A DNA stretch of 64,000 bases from Penicillus capitatus (lineage: Eukaryota > Plantae > Chlorophyta): contig OZ287694.1 of the NCBI GenBank assembly GCA_965649825.1, positions 2,509,696 through 2,573,695 on the forward strand, given 5' to 3'. Below are positions 39,834 through 64,000 of this stretch, piece by piece. The position numbers and the translations under genes were made by a program. The number at the start of each line of letters is the position of its first letter. The stretch's first letter is position 1. Below the pieces are notes generated by a model, which saw nothing but the letters and a program-made list of their open reading frames with translations, was not told where the DNA came from and ran no database searches.

Positions 39834-39967
39834 TGTCAGAATTCGCTATGAAATAACCTCGAGAAGGAAAGTTTATTAAAAGGCAAAATGTACAAACAAA
39901 CAGTTTCATGGTCCTTTTCACAGTAGTTGTCACATCAATTCGTGGACCATCAAACCATTTTCCGACA
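39834..39967 (-). repeat. 3' LTR of element A
   Basis: Direct repeat of 44916-45050. Confidence 0.95.
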
Positions 39968-40001
39968 TGGGCACAACACCTTCCGCTGTGAATACTCCGA
40001 A
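39968..40001 (-). other. tRNA-iMet 5'-half-like sequence at the PPT position of element A
   Basis: TTCGGAGTATTCACAGCGGAAGGTGTTGTGCCCA directly precedes the 3' LTR; plant iMet 5' half is ATCAGAGTGGCGCAGCGGAAGCGTGGTGGGCCCA. Confidence 0.7.
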
Positions 40002-40003
40002 AG

Positions 40004-43000
40004 TCAGAGATGGTAACGCGTCAGCTGAGAGGAGTGGGCCAATATCGGCGGTTTGCCGAGTCCAGGTCGTCGAATTATCCGCGTCGAATCTGATCTTTGC
40101 TCTTCAACAGTGAACGGACCAATACGTTTAGGTCCGAGCTTCTTCAATGGATGATATTGCCGGCCGTGGCTGATCATGAGAACACGGTCGCCGAGACGAA
40201 GTCCCTTGGATCGTCGCTTGTGTTTCCACTCGAAACGATTCCTTTCATAGGCTTTCGAACCGAGTTGCTTCGTCCGCGCCAGTTCCCAGGCCTGCCTGAC
40301 CTCATCTTCTTGCGCAATCACGCCATTCCTGTCTAATCCTCGCATGAGCATGGACGGAGTCGTGCCGATCGCTGAACTCCATGAATTATTGATGGCATGC
40401 ACAGCTCCGTCGACGACGCCGGGCCATCCTTCAGTCGAACCATTCAGCATCCGCCGCATTCGTTCGCAGAGCGTGCCGATCATGCGCTCAGCAAGGCCTG
40501 CTCCGCGATGATGCTTGGTCGGCGTTCTTCGTGTGTCGATGCCATGTCGGGCTGCCCATCTTCTGAAGGCATCTGAGTTCCAGCTGCGAAGGGTCACTGG
40601 TTCTGCCTCGAGTCATCTGGCGAGGAGTCGCTGCTGGCGCGCCAACCGTCCCTGTGGCGCCACGCCAGCAGAACATCATTGGAGCGCAGGACGAGAGGTG
40701 TGACAGAGGTGTGACGATATGCCTTACGTAATGATGTGACCCTCCTAATCCGGGGTATTTAAACGGAGCTGCCGTGCTGTATCTGTCTAGCTATGTAAAT
40801 AGCCATTGCCGACAGAGTTTCCCTGCGCGGCTCGCCATCCGGTCCGGACTCGGCCATCGGGTCGACGTTCACACCAGCACGAGACGTTGTCTGTGCACAG
40901 CAAGTGGATTCGTCCTCATCGAGACATCCAGGCATCGAGAGCCTTTATTGCGTGTTGGGAGCCAGTACCGGGAGTTCTCATGACTTCAACGTACTTCGTC
41001 GCATCGTCGACTATCACCAGAAGATGCGATCCATCGAAAAAGGGTACGGCATGGTCGGCGACGACCCGTTCTCCGGCGTGCTGGGCAGGCTCTGTGCTCG
41101 GGAGGTCTCTCGTTTGTGAATAAGCGTTGAAAGCACAATTCGGGCATTCGTCGATGTAATTCCGAACGTCCTTCTCCATTCCTTCCCAGCGTTCGTGATC
41201 GAGGAGAAGATTCTGAATAGTCACGCGTGGTCCCCAATGGCCAAAATGGGCGTCTCGAATCCTTTGTTCGATCACGTCAAAAGACGGTCGATCGACGGCG
41301 TGCACCTTAGCATTTGATACACGGGGCTTCTTGTCTTCCGGAGGGTTCATCCTTGACAACTGGTCTGCGACTTGATTTGCATTTCCCGGCAAATAGTCGA
41401 ACGTGCACCAGTTTTCATTTGAGCATAGGTAGTCGAAGACTCGTGCTGCCCTTTTGTCCGAGCAGAACGCTTCAATGCCCTTGTTCAGAGCATCCACGAC
41501 TCCTTTGTTGTCAATGATGACTCTCGTGGGAGTCTCTCCGCGAAAGATCCGTGTGTTCTCCAGTGCCCATTTGACGGTTTTCAGTTCGCCGAGGTATGAG
41601 CTTTGATTCGGGCATGGGTCTTTGGCGGATCCAACTGCAACTGTCACCGGATCCTCTTTGTCCTTGAACGAACGCAAGTGGTATCCGCGGTGCAGACCGC
41701 TTCAATCGACGTACAACTCGTACTCGTCGGCTTCTCTACTAAGGCTCAACCGAACGCCTTGTTCGATGAGCCGCGTCCATACCTTCTTCACCTCTTCGTT
41801 CACTCAACTCCACCACGCTTCTGAGCACAACGCAGAATTTTTCTGCGCACGTATCTTCGCCTCGTTAAGCGGAATTATGAGTTGGCTTAGGCCCACGACA
41901 TGAGAACGACAGAAATTCATTGCCCCCAGAACCCTCTCTAACTGCTTGTAGTGCGAAAAGACAGGCAAGATCGCGGCTTTTGAAGCACAATACCGCTCTA
42001 AGTCAAACATACCACCACCGATGTGAAAACCAAGAAAATCTACTTCGGGAACGGAGACGATGATTTTGTCTTTGTTCAACTTGAGGCCAAACTTAGACAA
42101 ACGCTTGAGTGTAAGATGGAGCAGCCTGTCGTGTTCCTCCTGATCCTTTCCCCCGATTAGCAGGTCATCAGCGTAGACGATCACGTCGAGTCCCATGAGA
42201 ATATCCTTCATTCGCTCGACGAACCATATCGGGCTCCAGTCGATGAGGTACCACTTTCCAGACGTACGTCTCATTAAAAATATTGAACCCAAAAAGCAGA
42301 AACGTTTCATGCTTCAGTCCCACAGAGAAGAAGGCGTCTGTAATATCGAGTTTGCTGAATACACGCCATGAGGAAGGAATCGAACGAATCGTTCTAAGAG
42401 TATCGACGAAGGTGGCTCCAGTAAAGTTGCACATCGCGTTGAGGAGACGGTAGTCATTGAGCGTGCGAATCTTTTTCCCGTCTTTCTTGGGCAGGAAAAA
42501 GATCGGCGACAGGAAGACGCCGTCACTTGCCTTGACTCGCTCAATGAAACCCTTTCTCAAGAAGGATTCTAATTCCTCTCGGATACGGCGTTCGGGGACA
42601 AGATTATCAATGCGAGGCACTGTGCGTTGCCCACCGAAGAAGGGGTCACACTTCAGCCGGCATTCCCTAATGTCCACCCTAAGCGCCTTCATAGCCGGCG
42701 TCATCGAGGATCGATCTCCGGAAAACACAGATGCAAACTCACTATAGATGTCGCCTTTTACGGGAAACACCGACTTCACGGCTACGTCCTTATGTTCAGA
42801 CGGCTCTACTGGTAAAAAAACAGCAAGTCAAACGTCCCGACAACCATAAGTTGCAAACGAAAGAGCGGCCAGGGAGTACCTGTGGTTGTTCGGTCGAGCT
42901 AAAAACTTGAACCCTGATCTGCCCACAGTCAGTTATGGAAATTGTATCCAAAATGCCCTTCTTGTCGAGAGAACATAAAAGAGAAACGCACGACAAGTTT

Positions 43001-43590
43001 CCTTCGACCACCCAGGGGAGATATAAACAGACCCACTCACGACTTGGTAGAAAAACTGTTTTCCCGACAGGTAATTTCGCTAGATTTCTACGGCAAACTG
43101 GGCGTACATTCCGCTCCGTTTCCCAGAGCTGTCGAATGTTTATCCCTTCGGAGTCGCCCCCCTCCGAGGGTTTCCTCAAAAAGACGCGGAGCAGATCATC
43201 GCCCGATCCTTCAAGCGGATCGTAGCTCCAAATACTTCCAACGCAGGTATCCCAATGATAAGTTTATGCGCTGAATCGGGAACGACGAGGAAGGACACCT
43301 GACGCGTCTTCTTGCCAAGCTGAGTCCCAAGCTGGAGTACACCCAGCGTCTTTGTCACAGACCCATTGAAACCGGCCAATCTCTTCGGTTCTCCGACGTC
43401 ATGCCACAAATCACTCTCCTTGAAGCCAAGGTCGATTGCTGTCTTCAGGGACATTATGTTTACCGAACTGCCAGTATCTATCAGTCCTTTGAACTTGAGG
43501 GACTTCCCATGTTTCGACGCGAAATTGAACGATACATGCAGGCGGCGTCCAATCAGTGGGGACTCCTCTTTCCCGATAGAGCAAACAGTC
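40004..43590 (-). pseudogene. pol of element A (protease-RT-RNase H-integrase), several frameshifts and one insertion
   Basis: KFKGLIDTGSSVNIMS; LSPIFFLPKKDGKKIRTLNDYRLLN; FSKLDITDAF; VIVYADDLLIG; YLGELKTVKWAL; HFGH...CPNC; VIVDDATKY; GLAERMIGTL, split across frames. Confidence 0.9.
40618..40918. mobile_element. 301-bp insertion inside the integrase of element A
   Basis: Flanked by tcgagtcatc (40608-40617) and tcgagacatc (40919-40928). It interrupts the integrase core between WMSR and VTLRSWNSDAF. Confidence 0.55.
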
Positions 43591-44916
43591 TTTCGTTCGA
43601 CGGGGTAATCTCCTCCTCGGTTGATCCTTCGTTCTCGAAAACCTCTTCCTCTTCTTCATTGGCCCTGGACGCCGCTGACGTCGATATCTTCTTTTGCGTT
43701 TCCACATCTTTTTCGGATCGACTCAGTTCGGTCGTCTCCGTGAGACTCTCCACCAGTTCCGAGGCAAGCTCCTCTTTCCCATCGTCGTCTCCGTCGAGGA
43801 ACGTTTCTAGGGCATCAATACGCGCCCTTCGACGAGCCACCAGTTGCCGGCGGTGGGCACAAAATCCTTTCTCATTGCATGTCTTGCACGGATGTTGCTG
43901 AAAGCATTCTGAATCATCGTGCTTGTCCGTCTGGCAGACCTTGCAGTATCGGTTTCGCAGCAGTGGTCGATAGGGCTGTCTTAACACTAGCGCCTTTTCA
44001 TTTGACCCCTCTCTGTTCCTGATGTCTTTCTTAATGTCTCCAAGAATGGCCTTCATTCCCGTGAGGTCTTCATCCACTTTGGCTTCGAGTCTTGCAACAC
44101 GATCCTCAATTTTTCTCTCCGTCTTCTTTATCTGTTTACCTGCATCCTCTCTTCTCTCCACCTTCTGCTGGATTTTGGCTTTTTCGACGAACGCCATAAG
44201 GAATGCAAAGAACGCTTTGGTGACAGCTATCGGGAGCACAATTCCGGGTGTACCCAGAACCCAACACGATCCAGACTTCAGCAATGATAACACTTTGTGA
44301 ATGTACAAGACGAGTGCGCATAGGAGCGTCCATCCCAGAACACCTTTTCCTATACCAAGGATGGAGGAGAGCGTCCGGATGACATGATGCCGTTGGCCTG
44401 ATTGTCTGTCTTGTCTCCAACGCCAAGCGGGTCTGTGACAATCGTTTTAACGAACTCCCACGCGTGCCTTATCGTCCTCGCAGAAATTCCACCGGTGAGT
44501 TTTAAACAGCACCAGAGGGTGCCACATCCCTCGACCACGAAAATTTCTTCGTTTCGATCGGCTTCGGGCCAGGAGCCTGTCATCCATTGCCACCATGATC
44601 GACTGTTCTTCTTATCAGAGCTCTTCATTGTCTCTTGCTGCATTTGATGAAGTTGTCTTTGCAATTCATCAATTTGCTCTTCATATCGTTTGTTCTTCTC
44701 GGAGAGTCTAGTTATCTCGCTTCGCAGGTTCTTGTTGTCACGCAACACATCCGTGACCGGAACTCCTGACTCCTCGAACCGCTTCTGCACGTCTTGGTCT
44801 TCGTCAGGGTTTTCTTTCTGCGTAACTGCCGCTTCCGCAGGTAACAATGCCAAGCAGAAAAGTAGCAGCGTCACGCCCATATTTCGCATCCGAGTGTAGC
44901 CTCGCTCCGAAACCAT
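43553..44916 (-). pseudogene. Gag-like ORF1 of element A, in two overlapping frames
   Basis: Signal-peptide-like N-terminus, coiled coil, two hydrophobic segments, CX2CX4HX4C knuckle (CKVCQTDKHDDSEC). A -1 frame change occurs in 44352-44448. Confidence 0.7.
44904..44915 (-). promoter_or_regulatory. Primer-binding site TGGTTTCGGAGC of element A (same PBS at 45261 in C and 49417 in B)
   Basis: Adjacent to the 5' LTR; 10/12 identical to the plant iMet PBS TGGTATCAGAGC. Confidence 0.85.
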
Positions 44917-45050
44917 GTCAGAATTCGCGATGAAATAACCTCGAGAAGGAAAGTTTATTAAAAGGCAAAATGTACAAACAAACAGTTTCATGGTCCTTTT
45001 CACAGTAGTTGTCACATCAATTCGTGGACCATCAAACCCATTTTCCGACA
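44916..45050 (-). repeat. 5' LTR of element A
   Basis: Direct repeat of 39834-39967, followed directly by the PBS. Confidence 0.95.
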
Positions 45051-45092: not shown

Positions 45093-47640
45093 TGTCACCA
45101 CAAAGTCGAAGAGAGAAGATGATATCATGACATAAAGCATGACGCAATTATAACGTCATGCTAGAAAACCATATAAGATGGGGTGTTTGATACAATCGAT
45201 ATCTTTTTGAAAACAAACGTCTGCCGAATTTAACCTCTTCGATATTTTCGCGTATCAAAATGGTTTCGGAGCTGCGAACCTCGAAAATCGACCTCGAAAC
45301 GTTTACCTCTATACTCGGTTCCGCGGCACTCGTCGAAGACGATTACCGCCCACGCATCAAACATGTTGTCCAGAAGCTAGAGCCGAGGTCGCCGGCCTTT
45401 GAGCTCTTCAGACAGGCGCTTGAGCGCGTCGAGCCCCATTTCCGCTCGCACGCTACTTTCCAGACGGCATTCGTAGGTGACGACGCAACTGTCCAACAAT
45501 TCTTCGCCGCCCAGGCGGCACCCACGACGGAGAACAAATGGACCATCGTGCGGGGAATAATACTCGCAGCGTGCCTAGTATCCTCGCTGTCAGCTGAAGA
45601 ACAGCTAGCGAGATGCACAAAGGGAAAAGGAGTGACATTGTCAGACTTCGTGGACAAGTACCTTGCCGCCTGTACCGTGTCCACCGCGTCCAGGGAGAAT
45701 CAGGTCAAGACATTGTACCGGAAGCTGCCGGCCAATCTCAAGAAGCTGATGCTTCACCTACCTCCGACGGCAACACCGGCCGATATGCGCATGGTGATGC
45801 GCAACATGAGCTTCTGGGAATCAGGGGCAACAGGAAGGGCTGAACCCGATGAGGATGCCATGGACATTGATCTGAGCATAATTCAAGCGAATGCCGCCAC
45901 GACGGATGGAAGGGTGATCATGAATGACGGGACGATCAATTTTTCCGCTATCACGAACGCAGGCAGAGTCATGGTTGGGGCCGGCGAGATCTGCAAGACA
46001 TCAAGACGCGAAGCACAGAACATGCTAAGGTTCCTTCAGCGAATATGCAACAACCAAGACGGACCAACAAATCAGAGGAGGCCAATGAACCAACTAAGAA
46101 GATGGGGAGGACGCCGCGCATTTGTGGCAGCAGAGGAGATCGCACCCGAAGGAAGCGGGGAACCAGTATGCGAGACGCTGAGTCAGGGAGGAGAAGAAGA
46201 CACCGAGCAAGACATGTCGCGAACCTATGCGGCACAAACGACGGGGAAAGGAAAAGAACAGAAAAAAGTGATGAAGCTTGGACTGGTCTCACAGAGCCAC
46301 CTTGGTTACCCAAGAAAGATCGACACTTTAGTCGATACAGGGGCAGAGTCCTCAATCATGTCCCTTGCGCTAGCCAAGGAACTAGGGGCTAAAATCGTAC
46401 CGGACGGGACGAGACTGCTTCTCGCCCACGGGAAGACGGCATAAGTCACCGGGAAATGCGAAATAGACGTGTCCATCGAGAAGACCACACATCCGACCTT
46501 CCGTCTGGATTGTCTGGTGCTACCGAACCCAGGGTATGATTTGCTCTTGGGGATAGACGCGATGACCAAGAACCAGATCTCGGCGCACCCACACAACAGA
46601 TCGGTAAGCATCAAAGGGCGAAACATCAAATGCCTCTTTGCGGGACCAAGAATGGACAAGGAAGTGAAGAATGGGGTCATCAGACAGGGGGACATTGGGC
46701 AATTAACAGAACGAGTTGAACATCTCCCAGCGATTAAGGGAGATAGGATTCAGGTGCCCTTGAACAAATCAGTAGTCTTGGGACCAAAAGAAAGCCGCAT
46801 GGTGAAGACACCGATCGTCATTCCGAGAACAATGGTGCACCAACGAACGCCATCGTTGCACCTCACTTCTCTGTACACCTGGGTGTACAATACGAGACCT
46901 TCTCGACCCTAACCTTGACTAACCATCGCGAGGAGCCCATTCGTATCACGGGGAAGACGACGATTTTTGAAATCCCCGCACAAACAGGAGAAGCCCAGAT
47001 GATCCGCGATTGCAATGGACAGCGACACCAGCTGCGCGGGACCAGGCAATCTTTTCCCAAGCGGCAGTAGACCAGCAGTCAGGCCTACTGTCGAGAAATC
47101 CGAAAACTGACTGCTGCGGTATGGAACAGCTGCTGATTGAATTCCCAGACGTCATCCGTGAAGGAATTGGGCGTTTTTCGGGTCGGGAGGTCGGCATCGA
47201 CGACGCACAAGGGCAGCTGCACTCAGTTTCTACCAAAGTCCCCTACACATTCGCGGCGGAGACTGCAGCATGTAGAAGGGAAATCGATCAACTAATCGAG
47301 GCCGGGGTTGTACGGAGGTTCCACGGGAAGCCGAAGCACGTCATTCCCTGGTTCTCAGTTGCGAAGAAGGACTCGCTTGAAAGGAGAGTAGTCCTCGACT
47401 TCAGAGGGCTAAACACTCTGACCGCCAGGAGGCCTGCCCTACCAATGCATCGCGAAGGGGCGGTCCAAGGTTTGTCCGGGATGTGCACTTTCGCAAAGTT
47501 CGATTTTAGGCATGGATTCTATCAAATTCCTCTGGCAGCTGACCTCCAGCCGTACTTCGTGACGATTTTCGACAAGCTGAACCTTTCGAGACCTTCTTCG
47601 AACACTATAACAAGTCTTCCGCTGTTATCGTTGGCGCGAC
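45093..47640 (+). mobile_element. Truncated Ty3/Gypsy element C (same family as B)
   Basis: Putative 5' LTR 45093-45257 (TGTCA...TCA; unverified, no 3' copy), PBS at 45261. ORF 45260-46444 holds gag (AMDID) + protease (LVDTGAESS), with a premature TAA at 46442. RT N-terminal part (IPWFSVAKKD, VLDFRGLN, KFDFRHGFYQ) then breaks off. Confidence 0.85.
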
Positions 47641-49172
47641 ACTTCCGCGGTGACAGACAGTACGGGCACAAGTAGGTATTTATAAGTCCTCGATCGAATA
47701 GCAAGGCAGCTAGTGACAGCTGGTTCGCTAAGAATTGACAAAGAGGTGAGAATTCATACCGGGTAAACGATTGCATCCATCAGGGGTAGACAAAACGTTC
47801 CCATCCTAGGAGGCGCACTTGTAAGGAGAGGTCGATGTTGTTCCATTGGCGGCTTGTAAGACAGCGGACGTAAGTTTGCGCTTGCGATCGGAAGCGTCTG
47901 CGTCCAGATGGCGAGTTAATTAACTGGGTGTAGACCGTGTGCGGCGGTAGATTCCTGATGTACTTGTTGGCGGAACATTGGAGTCTGGTGTCTCCATCCG
48001 AGAGTCTCCGTCAGGAGGTTTGTTGGTATCATTGATTGGTCGACCAAATGATGGGCGGAACGTCGTGTCATACATACGACAGTAGTGGCCAAGTCCGTAG
48101 AGTAAAATGCCACCATTGTCGAAGATCTTCTGCAGAATCGATTGATTAGCGAATAGACGTACGCTGCGGGACGGGACTAGAGTGTCAGTGGTACGACATC
48201 TTCGTTGGAGGCGTTGGACATGGATCGTTGCTGTCTGAATCTCTGCGTCTGACATGTGGACTAGCGAGGCGCTCTGGAAGCGGAATTCGGTAAGGATCTC
48301 TTCATCGGACAAGCTCAGATAGACTCCTTCTATGACTATGGACGGTCCTGGAGGTGTCGTTGGGGCAACGCCTATGGTCCAAGTGCCGTGGGATTCGAGC
48401 TCGAGAGGCGGACAAGAGGCAGCCACGATGGCTTGTTTGGCAGCTTCACTGAGTTTTAGTTTCCAACCGCCGCGAGGCAAGCGGTTTAAGAATTCAATAT
48501 GGTCATCCAGGGCAGCTGGGAGCTCAAGGCGTTGAATGAAAAAGCGAGTAAGTAAGCGCCTGAAGGATGGGTTTGGAATCGATTCTTGGCGTAGTAGGTC
48601 GGCCTGAGGAGTCAAGAAGCACTGCCTTGAGATGTCTGGTTGGAATGGTCTCAGAAGACGAAGTCTTTGAAGGGCAGACCGTTTTTCAGCCGAGAAATTT
48701 GAGTTGGCGATCTCGGGAGATCGTCAGGCCGTTCGATGGGAGGGTTCGTAGCTCTTGAAGTCCGGTCAGCGCCTTCTCGTGCCTTCTCCGCGTAGGTCGG
48801 CGGGCGGAGTACGGGTCCAGATGCCGGCCAAACCGTAGGGGCGCGTTGCAGGGCTTCGGAAATTCCGACAAAGAGGCGGTCCAATCTGGCTGCAACAATT
48901 TGGCAACGCATGTCTTCTAGATCGTCATCTGCGGCTCCTTGTGCATAAGTCGGCATTTACTGGTACGTCTTCTGTCGTCGGCGGAAGAAGTCGACGAACT
49001 CTGTCCATGGATGTTGGCCTGTAATGTCTGGGTCCTCCGCGATTGTGGCTTCCGTCGGAGTCCTCCGCGGGATTCGGTGCGCATCGCAAGTGCGTTTTCC
49101 TCCCGGCTCGGGGGGAAGGTCGGATTCGGTGTTCCGAGTAGAGGTGGATGGTCGATGTGACATGAACTCCTA
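47640..49172 (-). mobile_element. Internally deleted non-LTR (LINE-like) retrotransposon remnant
   Basis: ORF1-like PPTYAEKAR, SIVIEGVYLSLSDEEIL, VQRLQRR...PSRSVRL, followed by ORF2-C-terminus-like FLANQLSLAALLFDRGLINTYLCPYC. No RT core is left. Confidence 0.6.
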
Positions 49173-49176
49173 CTAG

Positions 49177-49414
49177 TGTCATGATGATGAAGAGCTGAAG
49201 GATGATGGTCCAATAAATGCCTCATCATCGTAAGAGGCACTGATGGCCAAACAGCTCTTAATGGCCACGTCACATCAGAACCTACCCGGCACCTACCCGG
49301 CACCTACTCAGCACCTATGAAACCCAACACTATAAAAAGGGGATTATTGTCACATTGATTATCTTTGTAAGAAACTTTGTTGCGTCTACCACCGTCACGT
49401 ATTTGCCCATGTCA
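49177..49414 (+). repeat. 5' LTR of element B
   Basis: Contains 11-bp acctacccggc repeats, TATA-like ctataaaaagg and TGTAA. Confidence 0.95.
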
Positions 49415-52400
49415 ATTGGTTTCGGAGCTGCGACTTTCGAAGATGGACTGTGAGGAGTTCACGTCCCTTCTCAACTCGGCAGCCTTCGTCGAGGACGATT
49501 ACCGCCCTCGCATCAAGTACGTGATTCAAAGGGTGGAGCCCAGATCGCCTGCCTTCGATCTGATACAGCGGGTCCTCGACCGAGTCGGACAGCGCTTTCG
49601 AACGCAGGCAGCATTCAATGAGGCCTTTTGCGGGACCCGCGGCAATAGTTTGCACTATTTTCGCCGACGAGGTTCTGCGCCTCAAAACTGAGGACATGAC
49701 CACTGTCCTCAGGAACGCTAGCTTCTGGGAGTCGAGCATGTTGACGCGAACGGACGCAGATCATGATCCCATTGACCCCGATGTGGCGACGACGCCGTTG
49801 GTCAACGTTGCCGCCGACGGAAGAGCGATCGGCAACGACGGCTCGATTAACTTTTCAGCGATCTCTAACGCTGGCAGAGTCATGGTCGGAGCCAGGGAAA
49901 TCTGCAGAACCTCCAGACGAGAGGCGCTCAACATGCTGAAGTTCTTACAAAAGATCAACAATTCGAGCAATGCATCGACAAGGCCACGAAGAGCAGCAGG
50001 CCAGTCGAGGAATGGAACGGGCGTCGTGCCTTCGCCGCAGATAAGTCTCTGCCGAAAGGAAACGAAGCACACGTCTGCGAGACCATTAGCGAGACAGAAG
50101 AAGACCCAACGGAACAGGATGTGCAGTTCGCACACACCGTTAGAGCGGTCACCAAGACCAGGAGAGTTTTAAAACTTGGTCTCGTATTTCCGAGCCATTT
50201 GGGATTTCCACGCCATATTAACGCTTTAGTTGATTTTGGCGCCGAGTCCTCCTTTGTATCCCCGGCACGAGCGAAAGAACTGGGAGTGAAGGTCAGGCCA
50301 GACGAGACCCGTCCGCTGTTGGCCCATGGAGAGACCGCGAAGGTCACCGGACGATGCGACTTCCAGGCAGCCCTGGCGCAATCCTCCGACCAGCAATTCT
50401 CCATGAGTTGCCTCGTACTACCGAGGCACGGCTATGATCTACTACTGTGCATGCGCGCGATGATCGACAGTAAGGTCTCCGCGCATCCCCACGACAGATC
50501 TATCAGCATCAGAGGCGACAGGTCAAATGCCACTTCACAGGACCGAAAGCCGACAAAAGGGCGGCTAATGAGATCGCGCATGAGAAGATATGCCACTGCA
50601 CCGAAAAAGTCGATCATCTACCGAGAATCACCGAAGAACGGCTGCAGGTGCCGTTGAACCGGTCAATCGTGCTCGGACCACGAGAGAGCAAGATGCTCAG
50701 ACGCCGAACGTGCTCCCCGGCGCACTCGTGTACAAGAGGGTTCCGACCGTGGCACCGCGATATTCGGTACACCTCGGTGTGCAGTACCACACGTTCTCAA
50801 CGCTCGCCAACCATGCCGCGGAACCAGTGAAGATAACTGGACGAACGACGATCTTGGACGTGCCCGCAAGACAAGACGTCGAGTATACCGCGTGCGATTG
50901 CAACGGAAACCCACATCCGTTGAGAAGCAACAGACCACCTTTTCCCAAACGGCAGTACGCTTGCAGTCAGGCATACTGTCGCTGAAGCCTAAAATTGGCT
51001 GCTGCAGTCTCGAACAGCTGCTGGCCCGATTCCCAAACGTACTTTGTGAAAAAATTGGACGTTTTTCGGGATGGGAGGTCGGCATCCGCGACGTACAAGG
51101 GCAACTACATTCGGTCTTTACCAAAGTTCCCTACACGTTCGCTGCTGAAACGACGGCATGCAGAAACGAGATCGACGCACTCATCGAAGCCGGAGTCGTC
51201 AGCCGATTTCACGGAAAACCGAAGCACATCATCCCCTGGTTTTCTGTTCCGAAGAAGAACTCGCTCGAGCGGCGAGTGGAGCTAGACTTTCGCGGACTCA
51301 ACACGCTGACCACAGGGAGTCCCGCGCTGCCCATGCATCGAGAAGGCGCAGTTCAGAACCTGTCCGGGATGCGCCACTATGCGCAGTTTGATTTCCGACA
51401 CGGATTCTAGCCGATACCTCTGGCACATGGCCTCCAGCCGTATTTCGTCACCGTGTCCGACCGAAAGCCCTACGCCTTCACACGGCTTCCGATGGGTTGG
51501 ATCAACTCAATGGCTTTCTTCGACCAAGATGTTAAAGAAACCATAGCGGAAGCACGAGACCAGTTGAAGCAGCAGAAGACTCGAACGGCAATCGAGAGCT
51601 ATGCCGACGACGTCTGCGTAGGAGCACGGACACAAGAAGATCTCGAGAGAGCAGTTCTCCAACTGCTGACGGTCTATGACAAATACCGGTGGACGGCATC
51701 TCCGAAGAAGTGCCAGGACGGTGTTAACGAGGTCGAGCTCCTCGGACACTGCTTCACGCCCGAAGGCGTTTTGCCCCCCAAAGCACGCTGCAGCAGTTGC
51801 CCCCTGCAGCGCCGCATCAACGAAGACCGCGGTCCGATCGTTTTCGGGACACCTTCGCACCTTGCTGGACTATTGCAAGTGCGACCTCCGCCGCAGCTTA
51901 GCGGCCCCGCTGCAGCAGTCGCTCAATGCAGCGCAGCCTCAAACGAAGACCACAGTCCGTTCGTTTTCGGGACTCTTTCGCACGTTGCTGAACTCTTGCA
52001 AGTGCGACCGCCGCAGCTTAGCGGCCCTGTCGAAACTCACGAACGCCAATACCAAAGTCATCCAACGATACTGGGCGGAGGATCCCAACCGCTGGGCCAC
52101 CCTCCTCCGCTCTCTCAACCGCATCTGGTATCACCGGTCTGACGCAGCTGGCCGTAATGTCGACCTGTATGTCGACGCTAGGATGGCTTTGGGTACGCGT
52201 TGTTCGACAGTGACTCTAAACGTCTCCTCCGCCTTCGAGCTGGCGGATTCCAACGTGAACCGTTCCGATCCAGTGGCAACGCTGAGCTACTCGGAATGAA
52301 AGAGGCGCTGAAGAAACAGGCACCTGCTCATGGGCAAACATCTCACCATCTTCACTGACGCCACCGTTGTCAAACAAGCGAGTCGAAGCAGCGAGCAGAG

Positions 52401-52900
52401 CTTCCTCGTGCAGTGTCATCTACACACCCTCAACCTCTCTGCAGGAAAGGACCAACGACGACCGAAGCTCCCGCGCTTGCGGCCACCGCACACCACAACT
52501 GCTGGCCAGTGTGGTACCTGCAGATGGAAAACTATCTGAAGACAGGTCGATGTCCCGATGACGCCAACCCCCAGTGCCAACACTTTGCCCGCCACGATTC
52601 GCCCGTCGCGCAGTCATTGAATACGTGGCAACCTATGAGGCAGTGCGTAGGCATGGACGTCATCGACCCCATGAAGCCTGACGGCTCCTCAAACTATATC
52701 ATCGCCGCAGTGAACCTCTGCACACGATTTTGTCTTCTCTCGGCATCCTCGCAAGCCAAAGCGACATCCATCATCAAACTGCTCGAGCGCTGGACAGCCC
52801 TCTTCGGCAACCCCGAGTGTCTGCAGACAGACAACGATTCAGCGCTCGTAGGCAATCAGTTATCCAATTGGATGTCGGCCCGAGGAATTCAACGCCGCAC

Positions 52901-52948
52901 CATCCCGTGATCGCACCATCCCGTGATCGCACCATCCCGTGATCGCAC
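52901..52948 (+). repeat. 3 x 16-bp tandem repeat (catcccgtgatcgcac) disrupting the element-B integrase
   Basis: Three exact copies. Confidence 0.9.
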
Positions 52949-53441
52949 TGCATAGGGACCTCCGAGCGTCTCAGCCGAGACGTCATCCGCCGTCCACACC
53001 GCCTTCAAAACTCAAGGCAAATGGACATCAGCTCTTCCCCAGATTCAGGCACTGCTAAACGCGCTTCCGAACTCGGTGACCAAACTCAGCGCCGCACAGA
53101 CCGCTTTCGGTTCTCAACCTCTCCCGCACTTCATTCCCGCGCCACTCACTTTCACCGCGCCCTTCTTGCAACTCGTTGGACCGCCATCGATCACCAGAGG
53201 CAGCACCAGCAACCACACCAACAACTGCCCCACTCTCACCGTTGCTCCGACATCCTAGTCGGCTCCCTGGTGCTGCTTTTTGACAATCAACACGCGCAGA
53301 CGCACGGCAACCAGCTTCCTCCGCGGTGGCTCGGACCGTAGACGATTCACGATACATTTTCTTCCTAACGTTACCGTTTCGTTTCTTCTTCTTCCAAGCA
53401 ACCCTTTCTCGCACATCGCGATCATCTACGACGTTTTTTCA

Positions 53442-53467
53442 ATCGGAGTTCAGCGCAGGGAAGCGAT
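53442..53467 (+). other. tRNA-iMet 5'-part-like sequence at the PPT position of element B
   Basis: ATCGGAGTTCAGCGCAGGGAAGCGAT precedes the 3' LTR; plant iMet is ATCAGAGTGGCGCAGCGGAAGCG. Confidence 0.65.
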
Positions 53468-53705
53468 TGTCATGATGATGAAGAGCTGAAGGATGATGGT
53501 CCAATAAATGCCTCATCATCGTAAGAGGCACTGATGGCCAAACAGCTCTTAATGGCCACGTCACATCAGAACCTACCCGGCACCTACCCGGCACCTACTC
53601 AGCACCTATGAAACCCAACACTATAAAAAGGGGATTATTGTCACATTGATTATCTTTGTAAGAAACTTTGTTGCGTCTACCACCGTCACGTATTTGCCCA
53701 TGTCA
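53468..53705 (+). repeat. 3' LTR of element B
   Basis: Identical direct repeat of 49177-49414. Confidence 0.95.
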
Positions 53706-53786
53706 CTAGCATCGCAGTTGCATTGGCTAAGTCGTTTGGAGAACATGCGGAACCTCCTGCTGAGGTCACGTGGGTGGTCGAGCACA

Positions 53787-56700
53787 CCACGTCACATCAT
53801 GTGTAACCTGACCTGTACGATCTGGAAGTGCTCTATGACGCCGGCGACACGGTCCAGCGAGGGTGGGAATGTGTCGGCGCGGTCGAGTGGATGCCGACGG
53901 ACCCTTGGTTGGAGCCCGACGGCGGCGTGCTCGGGCTGTGGCGCGACCTTTCCGGATTCGACATTTCGGCAGATTGCGGCCGACGGAGGGCCCACCGTCG
54001 GCAGACTTCGACGCAGACGGGTGCGGGACGCCTCGGGACACACCGCGGATGCCGATCGGTGCAAGCTCGTTTGGCTTTGGGCGGTGTCGTACGGAGTTGA
54101 AATCGTGGCGGTTACGTCGCATCAGGTGTAACCTGGCCTGTCAGTACGATCTGGAAGTGCACGACGACGCCGGCGACACGGTCGAGCGAGGGTGGGAATG
54201 TGTCGGCGGGGTCGAGTGGATGCCGACGGACCCTTGGTTGGAGCCCGACGGCGGCGTGCTCGGGCTGTGGCGCGACCTTTCCGGATTCGACATTTCGGCA
54301 GATTGCGGCCGACGGAGGGCCCACCGTCGGCAGACTTCGACGCAGACGGGTGCGGGACGCCTCGGGACACACCGCGGATGCCGATCGGTGCAAGCTCGTT
54401 TGGCTTTGGGCGGTGTCGTACTTGGTTGAAATCGAGGCCGTTACGTCGCATCAGGTGTAACCTGGCCTGTCAGTACGATCTGGAAGTGCACGACGACGCC
54501 GGCGACACGGTCGAGCGAGGGTGGGAATGTGTCGGCGGGGTCGAGTGGATGCCGACGGACCCTTGGTTGGAGCCCGACGGCGGCGTGCTCGGGCTGTGGC
54601 GCGACCTTTCCGGATTCGACATTTCGGCAGATTGCGGCCGACGGAGGGCCCACCGTCGGCAGACTTCGACGCAGACGGGTGCGGGACGCCTCGGGACACG
54701 CCGCGGATGCCGATCACCGGAGGCTCGTTTGGCTTTGGGTGTCGTACGGAGTTGAAATCGTGGCCGTTACGTCGCATCAGGTGTAACCTGGCCTGTCAGT
54801 ACGATCTGGAAGTGCACGATGCCGCCGGCGACACGGTCCAGCGAGGGTGGGAATGTGTCGGCGGGGTCGAGTGGATGCCGACGGACCCTTGGTTGGAGCC
54901 CGACGGCGGCGTGCTCGGGCTGTGGCGCGACCTTTCCGGATTCGACATTTCGGCAGATTGCGGCCGACGGAGGGCCCACCGTCGGCAGACTTCGACGCAG
55001 ACGGGTGCGGGACGCCTCGGGACACACCGCGGATGCCGATCACCGGAGGCTCGTTTGGCTTTGGGCGGTGTCGTACGGAGTTGAAATCGTGGCGGTTACG
55101 TCGCATCAGGTGTAACCTGGCCTGTCAGTACGATCTGGAAGTGCACGACGACGCCGGCGACACGGTCCAGCGAGGGTGGGAATGTGTCGGCGGGGTCGAG
55201 TGGATGCCGACGGACCCTTGGTTGGAGCCCGACGGCGGCGTGCTCGGGCTGTGGCGCGACCTTTCCGGATTCGACATTTCGGCAGATTGCGGCCGACGGA
55301 GGGCCCACCGTCGGCAGACTTCGACGCAGACGGGTGCGGGACGCCTCGGGACACACCGCGGATGCCGATCGGTGCAAGCTCGTTTGGCTTTGGGCGGTGT
55401 CGTACGGAGTTGAAATCGTGGCCGTTACGTCGCATCAGGTGTAACCTGGCCTGTCAGTACGATCTGGAAGTGCACGACGACGCCGGCGACACGGTCCAGC
55501 GAGGGTGGGAATGTGTCGGCGGGGTCGAGTGGATGCCGACGGACCCTTGGTTGGAGCCCGACGGCGGCGTGCTCGGGCTGTGGCGCGACCTTTCCGGATT
55601 CGACATTTCGGCAGATTGCGGCCGACGGAGGGCCCACCGTCGGCAGACTTCGACGCAGACGGGTGCGGGACGCCTCGGGACACACCGCGGATGCCGATCG
55701 GTGCAAGCTCGTTTGGCTTTGGGCGGTGTCGTACGGAGTTGAAATCGTGGCGGTTACGTCGCATCAGGTGTAACCTGGCCTGTCAGTACGATCTGGAAGT
55801 GCACGACGACGCCGGCGACACGGTCGAGCGAGGGTGGGAATGTGTCGGCGGGGTCGAGTGGATGCCGACGGACCCTTGGTTGGAGCCCGACGGCGGCGTG
55901 CTCGGGCTGTGGCGCGACCTTACCGGATTCGACATTTCGGCAGATTGCGGCCGACGGAGGGCCCACCGTCGGCAGACTTCGACGCAGACGGGTGCGGGAC
56001 GCCTCGGGACACACCGCGGATGCCGATCGGTGCAAGCTCGTTTGGCTTTGGGCGGTGTCGTACGGAGTTGAAATCGTGGCGGTTACGTCGCATCAGGTGT
56101 AACCTGGCCTGTCAGTACGATCTGGAAGTGCACGACGACGCCGGCGACACGGTCGAGCGAGGGTGGGAATGTGTCGGCGGGGTCGAGTGGATGCCGACGG
56201 ACCCTTGGTTGGAGCCCGACGGCGGCGTGCTCGGGCTGTGGCGCGACCTTTCCGGATTCGACATTTCGGCAGATTGCGGCCGACGGAGGGCCCACCGTCG
56301 GCAGTCTTCGACGCAGACGGGTGCGGGACGCCTCGGGACACACCGCGGATGCCGATCGGTGCAAGCTCGTTTGGCTTTGGGCGGTGTCGTACGGAGTTGA
56401 AATCGTGGCGGTTACGTCGCATCAGGTGTAACCTGGCCTGTCAGTACGATCTGGAAGTGCACGACGACGCCGGCGACACGGTCCAGCGAGGGTGGGAATG
56501 TGTCGGCGGGGTCGAGTGGATGCCGACGGACCCTTGGTTGGAGCCCGACGGCGGCGTGCTCGGGCTGTGGCGCGACCTTTCCGGATTCGACATTTCGGCA
56601 GATTGCGGCCGACGGAGGGCCCACCGTCGGCAGTCTTCGACGCAGACGGGTGCGGGACGCCTCGGGACACACCGCGGATGCCGATCGGTGCAAGCTCGTT

Positions 56701-59700
56701 TGGCTTTGGGCGGTGTCGTACTTGGTTGAAATCGTGGCGGTTACGTCGCATCAGGTGTAACCTGGCCTGTCAGTACGATCTGGAAGTGCACGACGACGCC
56801 GGCGACACGGTCCAGCGAGGGTGGGAATGTGTCGGCGGGGTCGAGTGGATGCCGACGGACCCTTGGTTGGAGCCCGACGGCGGCGTGCTCGGGCTGTGGC
56901 GCGACCTTTCCGGATTCGACATTTCGGCAGATTGCGGCCGACGGAGGGCCCACCGTCGGCAATCTTCGACGCAGACGGGTGCGGGACGCCTCGGGACACA
57001 CCGCGGATGCCGATCACCGGAGGCTCGTTTGGCTTTGGGCGGTGTCGTACGGAGTTGAAATCGTGGCGGTTACGTCGCATCAGGTGTAACCTGGCCTGTC
57101 AGTACGATCTGGAAGTGCACGACGACGCCGGCGACACGGTCCAGCGAGGGTGGGAATGTGTCGGCGGGGTCGAGTGGATGCCGACGGACCCTTGGTTGGA
57201 GCCCGACGGCGGCGTGCTCGGGCTGTGGCGCGACCTTTCCGGATTCGACATTTCGGCAGATTGCGGCCGACGGAGGGCCCACCGTCGGCAGACTACAACG
57301 CAGACGGGTGCGGGACGCCTCGGGACACACCGCGGATGCCGATCACCGGAGGTTCGTTTGGCTTTGGGCGGTGTCGTACTTGGTTGAAATCGAGGCCGTT
57401 ACGTCGCATCAGGTGTAACCTGGCCTGTCAGTACGATCTGGAAGTGCACGACGACGCCGGCGACACGGTCGAGCGAGGGCGGGGATGGGTCGGCGGGGTC
57501 GAGTGGATGCCGACGGACCCAAGTTTGGCGACCGACGGCGGCGTCCTCGGGCTGTGGCGCGGCCTTTCCGGATTCGACATTTCGGCACACTGCGGCCGAC
57601 GGAGGGCCCACCGTCGGCAGTCTTCGACGCAGACGGGTGCGGGACGCCTCGGGACACGCCGCGGATGCCGATCGGTGGAGGCTCGTTTGGCTTTGGGCGG
57701 TGTCGTACGGGGTTGAAATCGTGGCCGTTACGTCGCATCAGGTGTAACCTGGCCTGTCAGTACGATCCGGAAGTGCACGACGACGCCGGCGACACGGTCC
57801 AGCGAGGGTGGGAATGTGTCGGCGGGGTCGAGTGGATGCCGACGGACCCAAGTTTGGAGCCCGACGGCGGCGTTCTCGGGCTGTGGCGCGGCCTTTCCGG
57901 ATTCGACATTTCGGCAGATTGCGGCCGACGGAGGGCCCACCGTCGGCAGTCTTCGACGCAGACGGGTGCGGGACGCCTCGGGACACACCGCGGATGCCAA
58001 TCGGTGGAGGCTCGTTTGGCTTTGGGCGGTGTCGTACTTGGTTGAAATCGTGGCGGTTACGTCGCATCAGGTGTAACCTGGCCTGTCAGTACGATCCGGA
58101 AGTGCACGACGACGCCGGCGACACGGTCCAGCGAGGGTGGGGATGGGTCGGCGGGGTCGAGTGGATGCCGACGGACCCAAGTTTGGCGACCGACGGCGGC
58201 GTCCTCGGGCTGTGGCGCGGCCTTTCCGGATTCGACATTTCGGCACACTGCGGCACACGGAGGGCCCACCGTCGGCAGACTACAACGCAGACGGGTGCGG
58301 GACGCCTCGGGACACACCGCGGATGCCAATCGGTGCAAGCTCGTTTGGCTTTGGGCGGTGTCGTACTTGGTTGAAATCGTGGCCGTTACGTCGCATCAGG
58401 TGTAACCTGGCCTGTCAGTACGATCTGGAAGTGCACGATGACGCCGGCGACACGGTCCAGCGAGGGTGGGGATGTGTCGGCGGGGTCGAGTGGATGCCGA
58501 CGGACCATTGGTTGGAGCCCGACGGCGGCGTCCTCTGGCCGTGGCGCGGCCTTTCCGGATTCGACATTTCGGCACACTGCGGCACACGGAGGGCCCACCG
58601 TCGGCAGTCTTCGACGCAGACGGGTGCGGGACGCCTCGGGACACGCCGCGGATGCCAATCGGTGGAGGCTCGTTTGGCTTTGGGCGGTGTCGTACTTGGT
58701 TGAAATCGTGGCGGTTACGTCGCATCAGGTGTAACCTGGCCTGTCAGTACGATCTGGAAGTGCACGACGACGCCGGCGACACGGTCGAGCGAGGGCGGGG
58801 ATGGGTCGGCGGGGTCGAGTGGATGCCGACGGACCCTTGGTTGGAGCCCGACGGCGGCGTCCTCGGGCTGTGGCGCGGCCTTTCCGGATTCGACATTTCG
58901 GCACTCTGCGGCCGACGGAGGGCCGACCGTCGGCAGTCTTCGACGCAGACGGGTGCGGGACGCCTCGGGACACGCCGCGGATGCCGATCGGTGCAAGCTC
59001 GTTTGGCTTTGGGCGGTGTCGTACGGAGTTGAAATCGTGGCGGTTACGTCGCATCAGGTGTAACCTGGCCTGTCAGTACGATCCGGAAGTGCACGACGAC
59101 GCCGGCGAGACGGTCGAGCGAGGGCGGGGATGTGTCGGCGGGGTCGAGTGGATGCTGTAGGACCCTTGGTTGGAGCCCGACGGCGGCGTCCTCGGGCTGT
59201 GGCGCGGCCTTACCGGATTCGACATTTCGGCACACTGCGGCCGACGGAGGGCCCACCGTCGGCAGTCTTCGACGCAGACGGGTGCGGGACGCCTCGGGAC
59301 ACGCCGCGGATGCCGATCGGTGGAGGCTCGTTTGGCTCTGGGCGGTGTCGTACTTGGTTGAAATCGTGGCCGTTACGTCGCATCAGGTGTAACCTGGCCT
59401 GTCAGTACGATCCGGAAGTGCACGACGACGCCGGCGACACGGTCCAGCGAGGACGGGGATGGGTCGGCGGGGTCGAGTGGATGCCGACGGACCCTTGGTT
59501 GGAGCCCGACGGCGGCGTCCTCGGGCTGTGGCGCGGCCTTTCCGGATTCGACATTTCGGCACACTGCGGCCGACGGAGGGCCCACCGTCGGCAGACTACA
59601 ACGCAGACGGGTGCGGGACGCCTCGGGACACGCCGCGGATGCCGATCGGTGGAGGCTCGTTTGGCTCTGGGCGGTGTCGTACGGGGTTGAAATCGTGGCC

Positions 59701-62700
59701 GTTACGTCGCATCAGGTGTAACCTGGCCTGTCAGTACGATCCGGAAGTGCACGACGACGCCGGCGAGACGGTCGAGCGAGGGCGGGGATGTGTCGGCGGG
59801 GTCGAGTGGATGCTGTAGGACCCTTGGTTGGAGCCCGACGGCGGCGTCCTCGGGCTGTGGCGCGGCCTTACCGGATTCGACATTTCGGCACACTGCGGCC
59901 GACGGAGGGCCCACCGTCGGCAGTCTTCGACGCAGACGGGTGCGGGACGCCTCGGGACACGCCGCGGATGCCGATCGCCGGAGGCTCGTTTGGCTCTGGG
60001 CGGTGTCGTACTTGGTTGAAATCGTGGCGGTTACGTCGCATCAGGTGTAACCTGGCCTGTCAGTACGATCCGGAAGTGCACGACGACGCCGGCGACACGG
60101 TCCAGCGAGGGTGGGGATGGGTCGGCGGGGTCGAGTGGATGCCGACGGACCCTTGGTTGGAGCCCGACGGCGGCGTCCTCGGGCTGTGGCGCGGCCTTTC
60201 CGGATTCGACATTTCGGCACACTGCGGCCGACGGAGGGCCGACCGTCGGCAGTCTTCGACGCAGACGGGTGCGGGACGCCTCGGGACACGCCGCGGATGC
60301 CGATCGGTGGAGGCTCGTTTGGCTTTGGGCGGTGTCGTACGGGGTTGAAATCGTGGCCGTTACGTCGCATCAGGTGTAACCTGGCCTGTCAGTACGATCC
60401 GGAAGTGCACGACGACGCCGGCGACACGGTCCAGCGAGGGTGGGAATGTGTCGGCGGGGTCGAGTGGATGCCGACGGACCCAAGTTTGGAGCCCGACGGC
60501 GGCGTTCTCGGGCTGTGGCGCGGCCTTTCCGGATTCGACATTTCGGCAGATTGCGGCCGACGGAGGGCCCACCGTCGGCAGTCTTCGACGCAGACGGGTG
60601 CGGGACGCCTCGGGACACACCGCGGATGCCAATCGGTGGAGGCTCGTTTGGCTTTGGGCGGTGTCGTACTTGGTTGAAATCGTGGCGGTTACGTCGCATC
60701 AGGTGTAACCTGGCCTGTCAGTACGATCCGGAAGTGCACGACGACGCCGGCGACACGGTCCAGCGAGGGTGGGGATGGGTCGGCGGGGTCGAGTGGATGC
60801 CGACGGACCCAAGTTTGGCGACCGACGGCGGCGTCCTCGGGCTGTGGCGCGGCCTTTCCGGATTCGACATTTCGGCACACTGCGGCACACGGAGGGCCCA
60901 CCGTCGGCAGACTACAACGCAGACGGGTGCGGGACGCCTCGGGACACACCGCGGATGCCAATCGGTGCAAGCTCGTTTGGCTTTGGGCGGTGTCGTACTT
61001 GGTTGAAATCGTGGCCGTTACGTCGCATCAGGTGTAACCTGGCCTGTCAGTACGATCTGGAAGTGCACGATGACGCCGGCGACACGGTCCAGCGAGGGTG
61101 GGGATGTGTCGGCGGGGTCGAGTGGATGCCGACGGACCATTGGTTGGAGCCCGACGGCGGCGTCCTCTGGCCGTGGCGCGGCCTTTCCGGATTCGACATT
61201 TCGGCACACTGCGGCACACGGAGGGCCCACCGTCGGCAGTCTTCGACGCAGACGGGTGCGGGACGCCTCGGGACACGCCGCGGATGCCAATCGGTGGAGG
61301 CTCGTTTGGCTTTGGGCGGTGTCGTACTTGGTTGAAATCGTGGCGGTTACGTCGCATCAGGTGTAACCTGGCCTGTCAGTACGATCTGGAAGTGCACGAC
61401 GACGCCGGCGACACGGTCGAGCGAGGGCGGGGATGGGTCGGCGGGGTCGAGTGGATGCCGACGGACCCTTGGTTGGAGCCCGACGGCGGCGTCCTCGGGC
61501 TGTGGCGCGGCCTTTCCGGATTCGACATTTCGGCACTCTGCGGCCGACGGAGGGCCGACCGTCGGCAGTCTTCGACGCAGACGGGTGCGGGACGCCTCGG
61601 GACACGCCGCGGATGCCGATCGGTGCAAGCTCGTTTGGCTTTGGGCGGTGTCGTACGGAGTTGAAATCGTGGCGGTTACGTCGCATCAGGTGTAACCTGG
61701 CCTGTCAGTACGATCCGGAAGTGCACGACGACGCCGGCGAGACGGTCGAGCGAGGGCGGGGATGTGTCGGCGGGGTCGAGTGGATGCTGTAGGACCCTTG
61801 GTTGGAGCCCGACGGCGGCGTCCTCGGGCTGTGGCGCGGCCTTACCGGATTCGACATTTCGGCACACTGCGGCCGACGGAGGGCCGACCGTCGGCAGTCT
61901 TCGACGCAGACGGGTGCGGGACGCCTCGGGACACGCCGCGGATGCCGATCGCCGGAGGCTCGTTTGGCTCTGGGCGGTGTCGTACTTGGTTGAAATCGTG
62001 GCCGTTACGTCGCATCAGGTGTAACCTGGCCTGTCAGTACGATCTGGAAGTGCACGACGACGCCGGCGACGCGGTCGAGCGAGGGCGGGGATGTGTCGGC
62101 GGGGTCGAGTGGATGCCGACGGACCCTTGGTTGGAGCCCGACGGCGGCGTCCTCGGGCTGTGGCGCGGCCTTTCCGGATTCGACATTTCGGCACACTGCG
62201 GCCGACGGCGGGCCCACCGTCGGCAGTCTTCGACGCAGACGGGTGCGGGACGCCTCGGGACACGCCGCGGATGCCGATCGCCGGAGGCTCGTTTGGCTCT
62301 GGGCGGTGTCGTACTTGGTTGAAATCGTGGCGGTCACGTCGCATCAGGTGTAACCTGGCCTGTCAGTACGATCTGGAAGTGCACGACGACGCCGGCGACA
62401 CGGTCCAGCGAGGGCGGGGATGTGTCGGCGGGGTCGAGTGGATGCCGACGGACCCTTGGTTGGAGCCCGACGGCGGCGTCCTCGGGCTGTGGCGCGGCCT
62501 TACCGGATTCGACATTTCGGCACTCTGCGGCCGACGGAGGGCCGACCGTCGGCAGTCTTCGACGCAGACGGGTGCGGGACGCCTCGGGACACGCCGCGGA
62601 TGCCGATCGGTGGAGGCTCGTTTGGCTCTGGGCGGTGTCGTACGGGGTTGAAATCGTGGCGGTCACGTCGCATCAGGTGTAACCTGGCCTGTCAGTACGA

Positions 62701-64000
62701 TCCGGAAGTGCACGACGACGCCGGCGACACGGTCCAGCGAGGGTGGGGATGGGTCGGCGGGGTCGAGTGGATGCCGACGGACCCTTGGTTGGAGCCCGAC
62801 GGCGGCGTCCTCGGGCTGTGGCGCGGCCTTTCCGGATACGACATTTCGGCACACTGCGGCCGACGGAGGGCCGACCGTCGGCAGTCTTCGACGCAGACGG
62901 GTGCGGGACGCCTCGGGACACGCCGCGGATGCCGATCGCCGGAGGCTCGTTTGGCTCTGGGCGGTGTCGTACGGGGTTGAAATCGTGGCGGTTACGTCGC
63001 ATCAGGTGTAACCTGGCCTGTCAGTACGATCCGGAAGTGCACGACGACGCCGGCGACGCGGTCGAGCGAGGGCGGGGATGTGTCGGCGGGGTCGAGTGGA
63101 TGCTGTAGGACCCTTGGTTGGAGCCCGACGGCGGCGTCCTCGGGCTGTGGCGCGGCCTTACCGGATTCGACATTTCGGCACACTGCGGCCGACGGAGGGC
63201 CCACCGTCGGCAGTCTTCGACGCAGACGGGTGCGGGACGCCTCGGGACACGCCGCGGATGCCGATCGCCGGAGGCTCGTTTGGCTCTGGGCGGTGTCGTA
63301 CTTGGTTGAAATCGTGGCGGTTACGTCGCATCAGGTGTAACCTGGCCTGTCAGTACGATCCGGAAGTGCACGACGACGCCGGCGACACGGTCCAGCGAGG
63401 GCGGGGATGGGTCGGCGGGGTCGAGTGGATGCCGACGGACCCTTGGTTGGAGCCCGACGGCGGCGTGCTCGGGCTGTGGCGCGACCTTACCGGATTCGAC
63501 ATTTCGGCAGATTGCGGCCGACGGAGGGCCCACCGTCGGCAGACTTCGACGCAGACGGGTGCGGGACGCCTCGGGACACACCGCGGATGCCGATCACCGG
63601 AGGCTCGTTTGGCTTTGGGCGGTGTCGTACTTGGTTGAAATCGTGGCCGTTACGTCGCATCAGGTGTAACCTGGCCTGTCAGTACGATCTGGAAGTGCAC
63701 GACGACGCCGGCGACACGGTCCAGCGAGGGTGGGAATGTGTCGGCGGGGTCGAGTGGATGCCGACGGACCCTTGGTTGGAGCCCGACGGCGGCGTGCTCG
63801 GGCTGTGGCGCGACCTTACCGGATTCGACATTTCGGCAGATTGCGGCCGACGGAGGGCCCACCGTCGGCAGACTTCGACGCAGACGGGTGCGGGACGCCT
63901 CGGGACACACCGCGGATGCCGATCACCGGAGGCTCGTTTGGCTTTGGGCGGTGTCGTACTTGGTTGAAATCGTGGCCGTTACGTCGCATCAGGTGTAACC
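53787..64000. repeat. 329-bp GC-rich satellite array, ~31 monomers, runs off the window end
   Basis: Period 329 (e.g. 54122, 54451; one 326-bp unit to 54777). The first monomer is diverged; two sequence subfamilies and a 2632-bp duplication are present. Confidence 0.98.

Follow-up and report, generated by a model that had tools for sequence, protein, structure and literature searches.

How does a retrotransposon prime its second DNA strand when the site just upstream of its 3' LTR, normally occupied by a purine tract, instead resembles the 5' part of the tRNA that primes its first strand? The question is raised by positions 53442 to 53467 (ATCGGAGTTCAGCGCAGGGAAGCGAT) of the 64,000-nt stretch of DNA analyzed here, referred to as the window. 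This segment reads ATCGGAGT-TCA-GCGCAG-GGAAGCG-AT and is followed at 53468 by TGTCA, the first bases of a 3' LTR. A preliminary description had matched it to nt 1 to 24 of a plant-type initiator tRNA-Met (tRNA-iMet) at about 20 positions, ending 2 nt before the LTR, and regarded it, together with a similar site in a second element, as a conserved functional element of a lineage of algal Ty3 elements rather than a chance match. Our analysis confirms that the observation is real, whereas the interpretation is only partly supported, as detailed below.

To establish which element the segment belongs to, the window was compared to itself, leaving out a satellite that fills 53754 to 64000. This satellite is a tandem array of at least 31 copies of a 329-bp unit (93 to 100% identical, GC about 66%), which starts 49 bp after the 3' LTR and runs off the end of the window. 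The segment lies in a 4.5-kb Ty3/Gypsy-type element, element B (49177 to 53705, plus strand), with a 238-bp LTR pair at 49177 to 49414 and 53468 to 53705 (TGTCA...TGTCA) that is 100% identical and is bounded by a CTAG target-site duplication at 49173 to 49176 and 53706 to 53709. Two nucleotides (AT) after the 5' LTR, at 49417 to 49428, is the primer-binding site (PBS), TGGTTTCGGAGC. The internal region, 49429 to 53441, is a decayed gag-PR-RT-RH-IN, with Pfam matches to Asp_protease_2, RVT_1, and rve in that order, as in Ty3/Gypsy (Metaviridae) elements; intact relatives show RVT_1, RT_RNaseH, Integrase_H2C2, and rve. A nonsense codon at 51408 to 51410 falls in the RT motif GFYQIP, and there is a 122-bp tandem duplication at 51786 to 52027. 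An alternative genetic code was considered for the in-frame stop, but intact relatives read GFYQIP within standard-code ORFs of 700 to 940 aa, so it is a plain nonsense mutation. With identical LTRs but dead genes, and a 3' 1.1 kb only 84% identical to an intact copy, B looks like a non-autonomous or recombinant copy moved in trans.

Element B is one of three elements that sit side by side next to the satellite in a transposon-rich block. Element A occupies 39834 to 45050 on the minus strand, with 135-bp LTRs (3' LTR at 39834 to 39967, 5' LTR at 44916 to 45050), a 5-bp target duplication (GATAT), and the same 12-nt PBS at 44904 to 44915, directly abutting its 5' LTR. Element C (about 45093 to 47700, plus strand; PBS at 45261 to 45272) is a third, 3'-truncated element of the B lineage, of the same family as one found at a retrieved locus, L004 (L numbers denote loci and contigs retrieved for comparison). 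At 35409 to 39035 (plus strand) is a 1,208-aa ORF that combines a NACHT NTPase domain with about 13 HEAT repeats, an NLR-like architecture, and whose DNA has 111-bp periodic internal repeats.

We next asked which tRNA the PBS specifies. ARAGORN finds no tRNA in the window, and the first loci retrieved also hold no tRNA gene. As the PBS fixes the 3' acceptor strand of the primer, the 5' end of the gene was predicted and public metagenomes were scanned for TCGGAGTGGCGCAGNGGAAGCG. The dominant hit, about 35 gene copies on GenBank JAABU* metagenome contigs (L006 to L058; for example, L006 7540 to 7611), is a 72-nt tRNA-Met(CAT) gene, TTCGGAGTGGCGCAGCGGAAGCGTGGAGGGCCCATAACCCTCAGGTCCCTGGATCGAAACCAGGCTCCGAAA, with the initiator-type T-loop GATCGAAAC, G4:C69, and an unusual U1:A72 pair in place of the near-universal eukaryotic A1:U72; some copies carry an intron after nt 37. 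With CCA added, its 3' end, GCTCCGAAACCA, is the exact complement of the PBS. The same 12-mer occurs in all A- and B-lineage elements, 0 to 3 nt after the LTR, while the 13th nt varies among them, so that the PBS corresponds exactly to nt 65 to 76. These contigs share no DNA with the window's assembly, and the tRNA is therefore host-type by inference from the PBS, not by direct observation.

Against this tRNA, the segment in B aligns to nt 2 to 24 with 20 matches, 1 mismatch, a 2-nt insertion, and a 1-nt deletion (score, 28), and the similarity ends 2 nt before the LTR without continuing into it, as a whole tRNA would require. The reference thus needed correcting from that of the preliminary description: motif position 1 (A) does not match U1, while G4 matches, as had been stated. 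The counterpart in element A, TTCGGAGTATTCACAGCGGAAGGTGTTGTGCCCA (39968 to 40001, minus strand), is colinear with tRNA-iMet nt 1 to 35 and abuts the 3' LTR, which begins TGTCGG; counting the first T of the LTR, 29 of 36 positions match (score, 34 to 36). Random 40-mers reach 28 in 18 of 200,000 trials (P of about 9e-5) and 30 in only 3 (at most 1.5e-5 for A), these probabilities resting on random sequence, as the contigs retrieved held too few non-Met tRNAs for a specificity panel. On both strands of window positions 1 to 53750, the only sites scoring ≥28 are these two junctions, both on the sense strand of their element and both ending at the LTR; the next best site scores 26. Chance is excluded. 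Neither junction is a recognizable tRNA gene or pseudogene or tRNA-derived SINE, as an Rfam search at E ≤10 returned no tRNA or other credible family at either one.

To determine whether the motif is conserved, we retrieved DNA around relatives of the B RT from ENA assembly ERZ25074695 and around relatives of the pol of the most intact of these from ERZ26696514 and a Logan assembly; a scan of viral contigs for pol relatives found none. Absence of the motif from other B-family copies had been set beforehand as a condition that would refute the interpretation, but two further B copies (L002 and L001) carry the identical motif. Eight other families with different LTRs (L003, L001 minus strand, L005, L059, L061, L062, L063, and L064), with 54 to 81% pol identity to one another, all read CGGAGT-NNN-GC(G/A)CAGGGAAGCGAT|TG, giving nine LTR-distinct families from two assemblies. 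A relative with 37% pol identity from a third data set (L060) has the same PBS and keeps the D-arm half, ACGCAGTGGAAGCTT|TG, at the same distance from its LTR. The motif ends exactly 2 nt before TG in all nine B-lineage families and in L060, and the LTR ends are fixed by 4-bp target duplications in five copies (B, L002, L005, L059, and L061). Four copies with 100% identical LTRs (L002, L005, L063, and L064) show that elements with this site are active, as do the intact ORFs of several. A tRNA-Gln gene (L059 2144 to 2215) lies 825 bp upstream of the L059 element, and in L029 an LTR end with the same PBS (1544 to 1559) lies 2.1 kb from a tRNA-iMet gene (3701 to 3772), which may hint at integration near Pol III genes.

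The conserved sequence has a modular organization. Module 1, TCGGAGT (53443 to 53449), corresponds to tRNA nt 2 to 8, with CGGAGT invariant (identity, 1.00) in the nine families. It is followed by a spacer (TCA, 53450 to 53452) of constant length but free sequence (mean pairwise identity, 0.32), which replaces tRNA G9. Module 2, GCGCAGGGAAGCG (53453 to 53465), corresponds to the D-arm, nt 10 to 24 lacking C16, and together with the AT that follows (53466 to 53467; invariant in the B lineage) has an identity of 0.99. In every intact B-lineage copy the pol reading frame runs through the site (...HRDHLRxFxxRSxAQGSDC...) and ends 24 to 150 nt inside U3 of the 3' LTR (L005 10673 to 10708, L059 7725 to 7778, L061 7662 to 7685, L062 4035 to 4184, and L063 7680 to 7751). 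The constraint is nevertheless on the nucleotides, as mean pairwise identity at third codon positions is 0.97 in the motif but 0.40 in the 22 codons upstream, with 0.59 over the first 12 nt of the LTR. Moreover, the motif is non-coding in A and L060, so it is not a protein signal, and the coding-dead B copy of the window keeps its last 27 nt identical to the intact L002 copy, while its 3' 1.1 kb is only 84% identical to that copy.

Elements A and B are deeply diverged, sharing only 26% identity over 178 aa of pol, with 5-bp versus 4-bp target duplications and LTRs without detectable similarity, so that B is a genuine second case. The preliminary description had based this on unrelated LTRs and Gag proteins; here the divergence rests on pol, duplication length, and LTRs. 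The junction of A is known from a single decayed copy, as a protein search returned only the window's own product, and a second A copy (L001 6140 to 6881, 97% identical) breaks off after 741 bp, on a contig that also holds a B copy and a cousin element in the opposite orientation. The claims that the match is not chance and that it is a conserved, position-anchored cis element are thus supported. That it acts by mimicking the tRNA is not established, and an algal host is not established by the sequences retrieved.

We consider it most likely, with a probability of roughly 0.6, that the 26 nt are the plus-strand priming site of a Ty3/Gypsy-type element, built from a captured 5' segment (5' acceptor strand plus D-arm) of the same tRNA-iMet whose 3' end primes the minus strand. 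The position 2 nt from U3, the colinearity with the tRNA, the strict nucleotide-level conservation across families, and the absence of any other purine tract nearby come directly from the sequences, whereas RNase H resistance, priming, and every other functional step are inferred. In this view, after minus-strand DNA has been copied across the site, the element's RNase H would spare the genomic RNA segment ending ...GCGCAGGGAAGCG, whose last 8 nt are 7/8 (88%) purine, and that RNA would prime plus-strand strong-stop DNA. The AT would become the 2 nt that integrase trims, mirroring CA|AT|TGG at the PBS side, and CGGAGT, held at a fixed 3-nt distance, would act as an upstream determinant. The tRNA segment was probably captured once or twice in the past, by template switching either onto packaged tRNA or onto a read-through RNA from an LTR inserted in a tRNA-iMet gene, and kept because its G/A-rich D-arm can serve as primer. 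No purine run ≥10 nt lies near the 3' LTR of any B-lineage element, or anywhere outside the LTRs in the B copy of the window, and there is no second, internal copy of the motif such as a central polypurine tract (PPT). AGGGAAG, previously described as the only purine run, is the longest near the junction, yet at 7 nt it falls short of the uninterrupted run of about 8 to 15 purines of a PPT; three C residues interrupt the tract, which is 75% purine over 12 nt. Element A fits less well, as its junction, GTGTTGTGCCCA|TG (39968 to 39980, minus strand), has only 38 to 42% purine (42% in the last 12 nt before the LTR), which a classical RNase H-resistant primer does not explain; its pol stop codon lies 2 nt before the tRNA-like stretch, so that its whole 3' untranslated region is the tRNA copy. 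A plain PPT model also does not explain why module 1 is conserved.

An unlikely but not excluded alternative is that the tRNA itself primes the plus strand, so that one tRNA species would prime both strands and replace the PPT mechanism. The complement of the motif on minus-strand DNA would act as a second PBS for the 5' part of tRNA-iMet, up to G24 in the B lineage and up to A35, in the anticodon, in element A; the bound tRNA, either a free copy or the molecule still attached to the minus strand, would be nicked at the end of the hybrid, and its 3'-OH would start plus-strand DNA at U3. This would be the mirror image of the half-tRNA-iMet priming established for copia and Ty5 (PMC5371799). In keeping with this, the colinearity starts at nt 1 to 2 and ends exactly at U3 in two lineages with only 26% pol identity, and A, which lacks a purine tract at the junction, matches tRNA nt 31 to 35 perfectly in its last 5 nt (GCCCA), favoring a tRNA primer there. 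L060 carries T at D-loop position 16, and a T16 variant of the same tRNA exists. Deviations in both A and B fall at nt 9 to 10, which carry base-pair-blocking methylations in known initiators. In contrast, all nine B-lineage families keep the same departures from the tRNA (C16 missing, two extra nt at position 9, and AT where the tRNA has UG), which selection for pairing with the tRNA should have removed. A is only 29/36 identical, a literature search found no precedent, and plus-strand priming from genome-derived RNA is universal in the elements studied so far.

More doubtful still is a protein-binding tRNA mimic, in which an acceptor-stem-like and a D-arm-like hairpin would be recognized by whichever element or host protein selects tRNA-iMet (Gag/NC, RT, or a tRNA-binding host factor), coupling genome packaging or RT recruitment to primer selection, as the tRNA-like element of HIV-1 does with LysRS. 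RNAalifold independently predicts both hairpins, the first pairing columns 49 to 54 with 66 to 71, with CTACGA (53426 to 53431) as a possible, weakly supported partner of TCGGAG, and A has an analogous CTCTGA-ctt-TCGGAG hairpin in its minimum-energy fold; module 1 is conserved although a purine-tract primer would not need it. Covariation amounts to one compensatory change (A:U to U:A, in L059) against 7 broken cells of the 72 counted, 6 of them in the acceptor-stem-like helix, with an unfavorable covariation term (+0.69), and fold z-scores are 0.1 to 0.6, no better than shuffles. The only change in the D-stem breaks a pair without compensation, and the upstream strand of the first helix is also a Leu-Arg codon pair whose synonymous changes break pairs. 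This model does not explain the exact abutment on U3.

Two further readings are very unlikely. A Ty3-style 3' half of a bipartite PBS, pairing with the primer tRNA to bridge the genome ends for minus-strand transfer, is suggested by the tRNA-iMet-related sequences at the 3' end of the Ty3 genome (PMC5371799) and by the ability of TCGGAG to pair with tRNA nt 66 to 71, but the motif has the same sense as the tRNA, lies upstream of U3, has a duplex energy with the tRNA no better than that of shuffled motifs (z of -1.0 for the full tRNA and +0.7 to +1.1 once nt 65 to 76 are occupied by the PBS), and has no conserved complementary partner inside the elements, which also leaves Ty1-style cyclization unsupported. 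Coincidental likeness of an ordinary purine-rich tract or coding constraint, although PPTs are usually conserved within lineages and the motif lies within pol in intact B-lineage copies, is contradicted by the random probabilities, by the restriction of scores ≥28 to two sites in 107 kb at the same anatomical position, by the match to the very tRNA that the PBS specifies, by invariant third codon positions, by the non-coding motif of A and L060, and by the D-arm-like block of A, which lies 13 nt further from the LTR with the gap filled by tRNA-colinear sequence.

Full-text searches found no description of tRNA-derived or tRNA-primed plus-strand sites, and the nearest known features all differ in sense, position, or the part of the tRNA involved. 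Like the PPT of retroviruses and LTR retrotransposons, the motif sits immediately upstream of U3, with a 2-nt gap before TG, is G/A-rich at its 3' end, is the most conserved non-LTR cis element of its lineage, and presumably supplies the plus-strand primer. However, it has only 7 consecutive purines, compared with 13 in Yarrowia Tyl3 (PMC5014426) and 16 after pol in an outgroup chromovirus contig (L065), which is circularly permuted with LTR ends that could not be placed; it is also colinear with the element's own primer tRNA and has a second conserved module upstream. Ty3 is likewise primed by tRNA-iMet and carries further tRNA-iMet-related sequence at the 3' end of its genome, but its segments are complementary to the T and D arms and lie in U3 (1998, as summarized in PMC5371799). 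Half-tRNA priming in copia and Ty5 uses a 5' fragment of tRNA-iMet cut in the anticodon loop, where the copy in element A stops, and on the bottom strand the motif looks like such a PBS next to an LTR; in those elements, however, the site adjoins the 5' LTR and primes the minus strand (PMC5371799), while here a normal 12-nt 3'-end PBS is present and the tRNA-half site lies at the plus-strand priming position. The HIV-1 tRNA-like element also copies part of the primer tRNA, but it lies next to the PBS in the 5' leader, mimics the tRNA-Lys3 anticodon arm, and acts by binding lysyl-tRNA synthetase, whereas the copy here is at the 3' end and covers a different part of the tRNA. Helenus and Cassandra TRIMs have incorporated tRNA- or 5S-derived sequence, but these are non-autonomous elements with a whole tRNA-like unit inside the LTR acting as a Pol III promoter (PMC10886601), whereas here autonomous elements carry only the 5' third of the tRNA, outside the LTR, at the inferred priming site.

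Plus-strand priming from an RNase H-resistant PPT is treated as universal for retroviruses and LTR retrotransposons. Here, two deeply diverged lineages in one host have, at that exact site, a sense copy of the 5' part of their own primer tRNA, as inferred from the PBS, and one of them (A) has no purine tract there at all. The U1:A72 initiator tRNA that these elements are inferred to use is itself unusual for a eukaryote. At minimum, this shows that primer-tRNA sequence can be captured and turned into what is inferred to be an essential cis element, and it gives annotators a lineage marker; at most, it points to a second use of the tRNA in reverse transcription.
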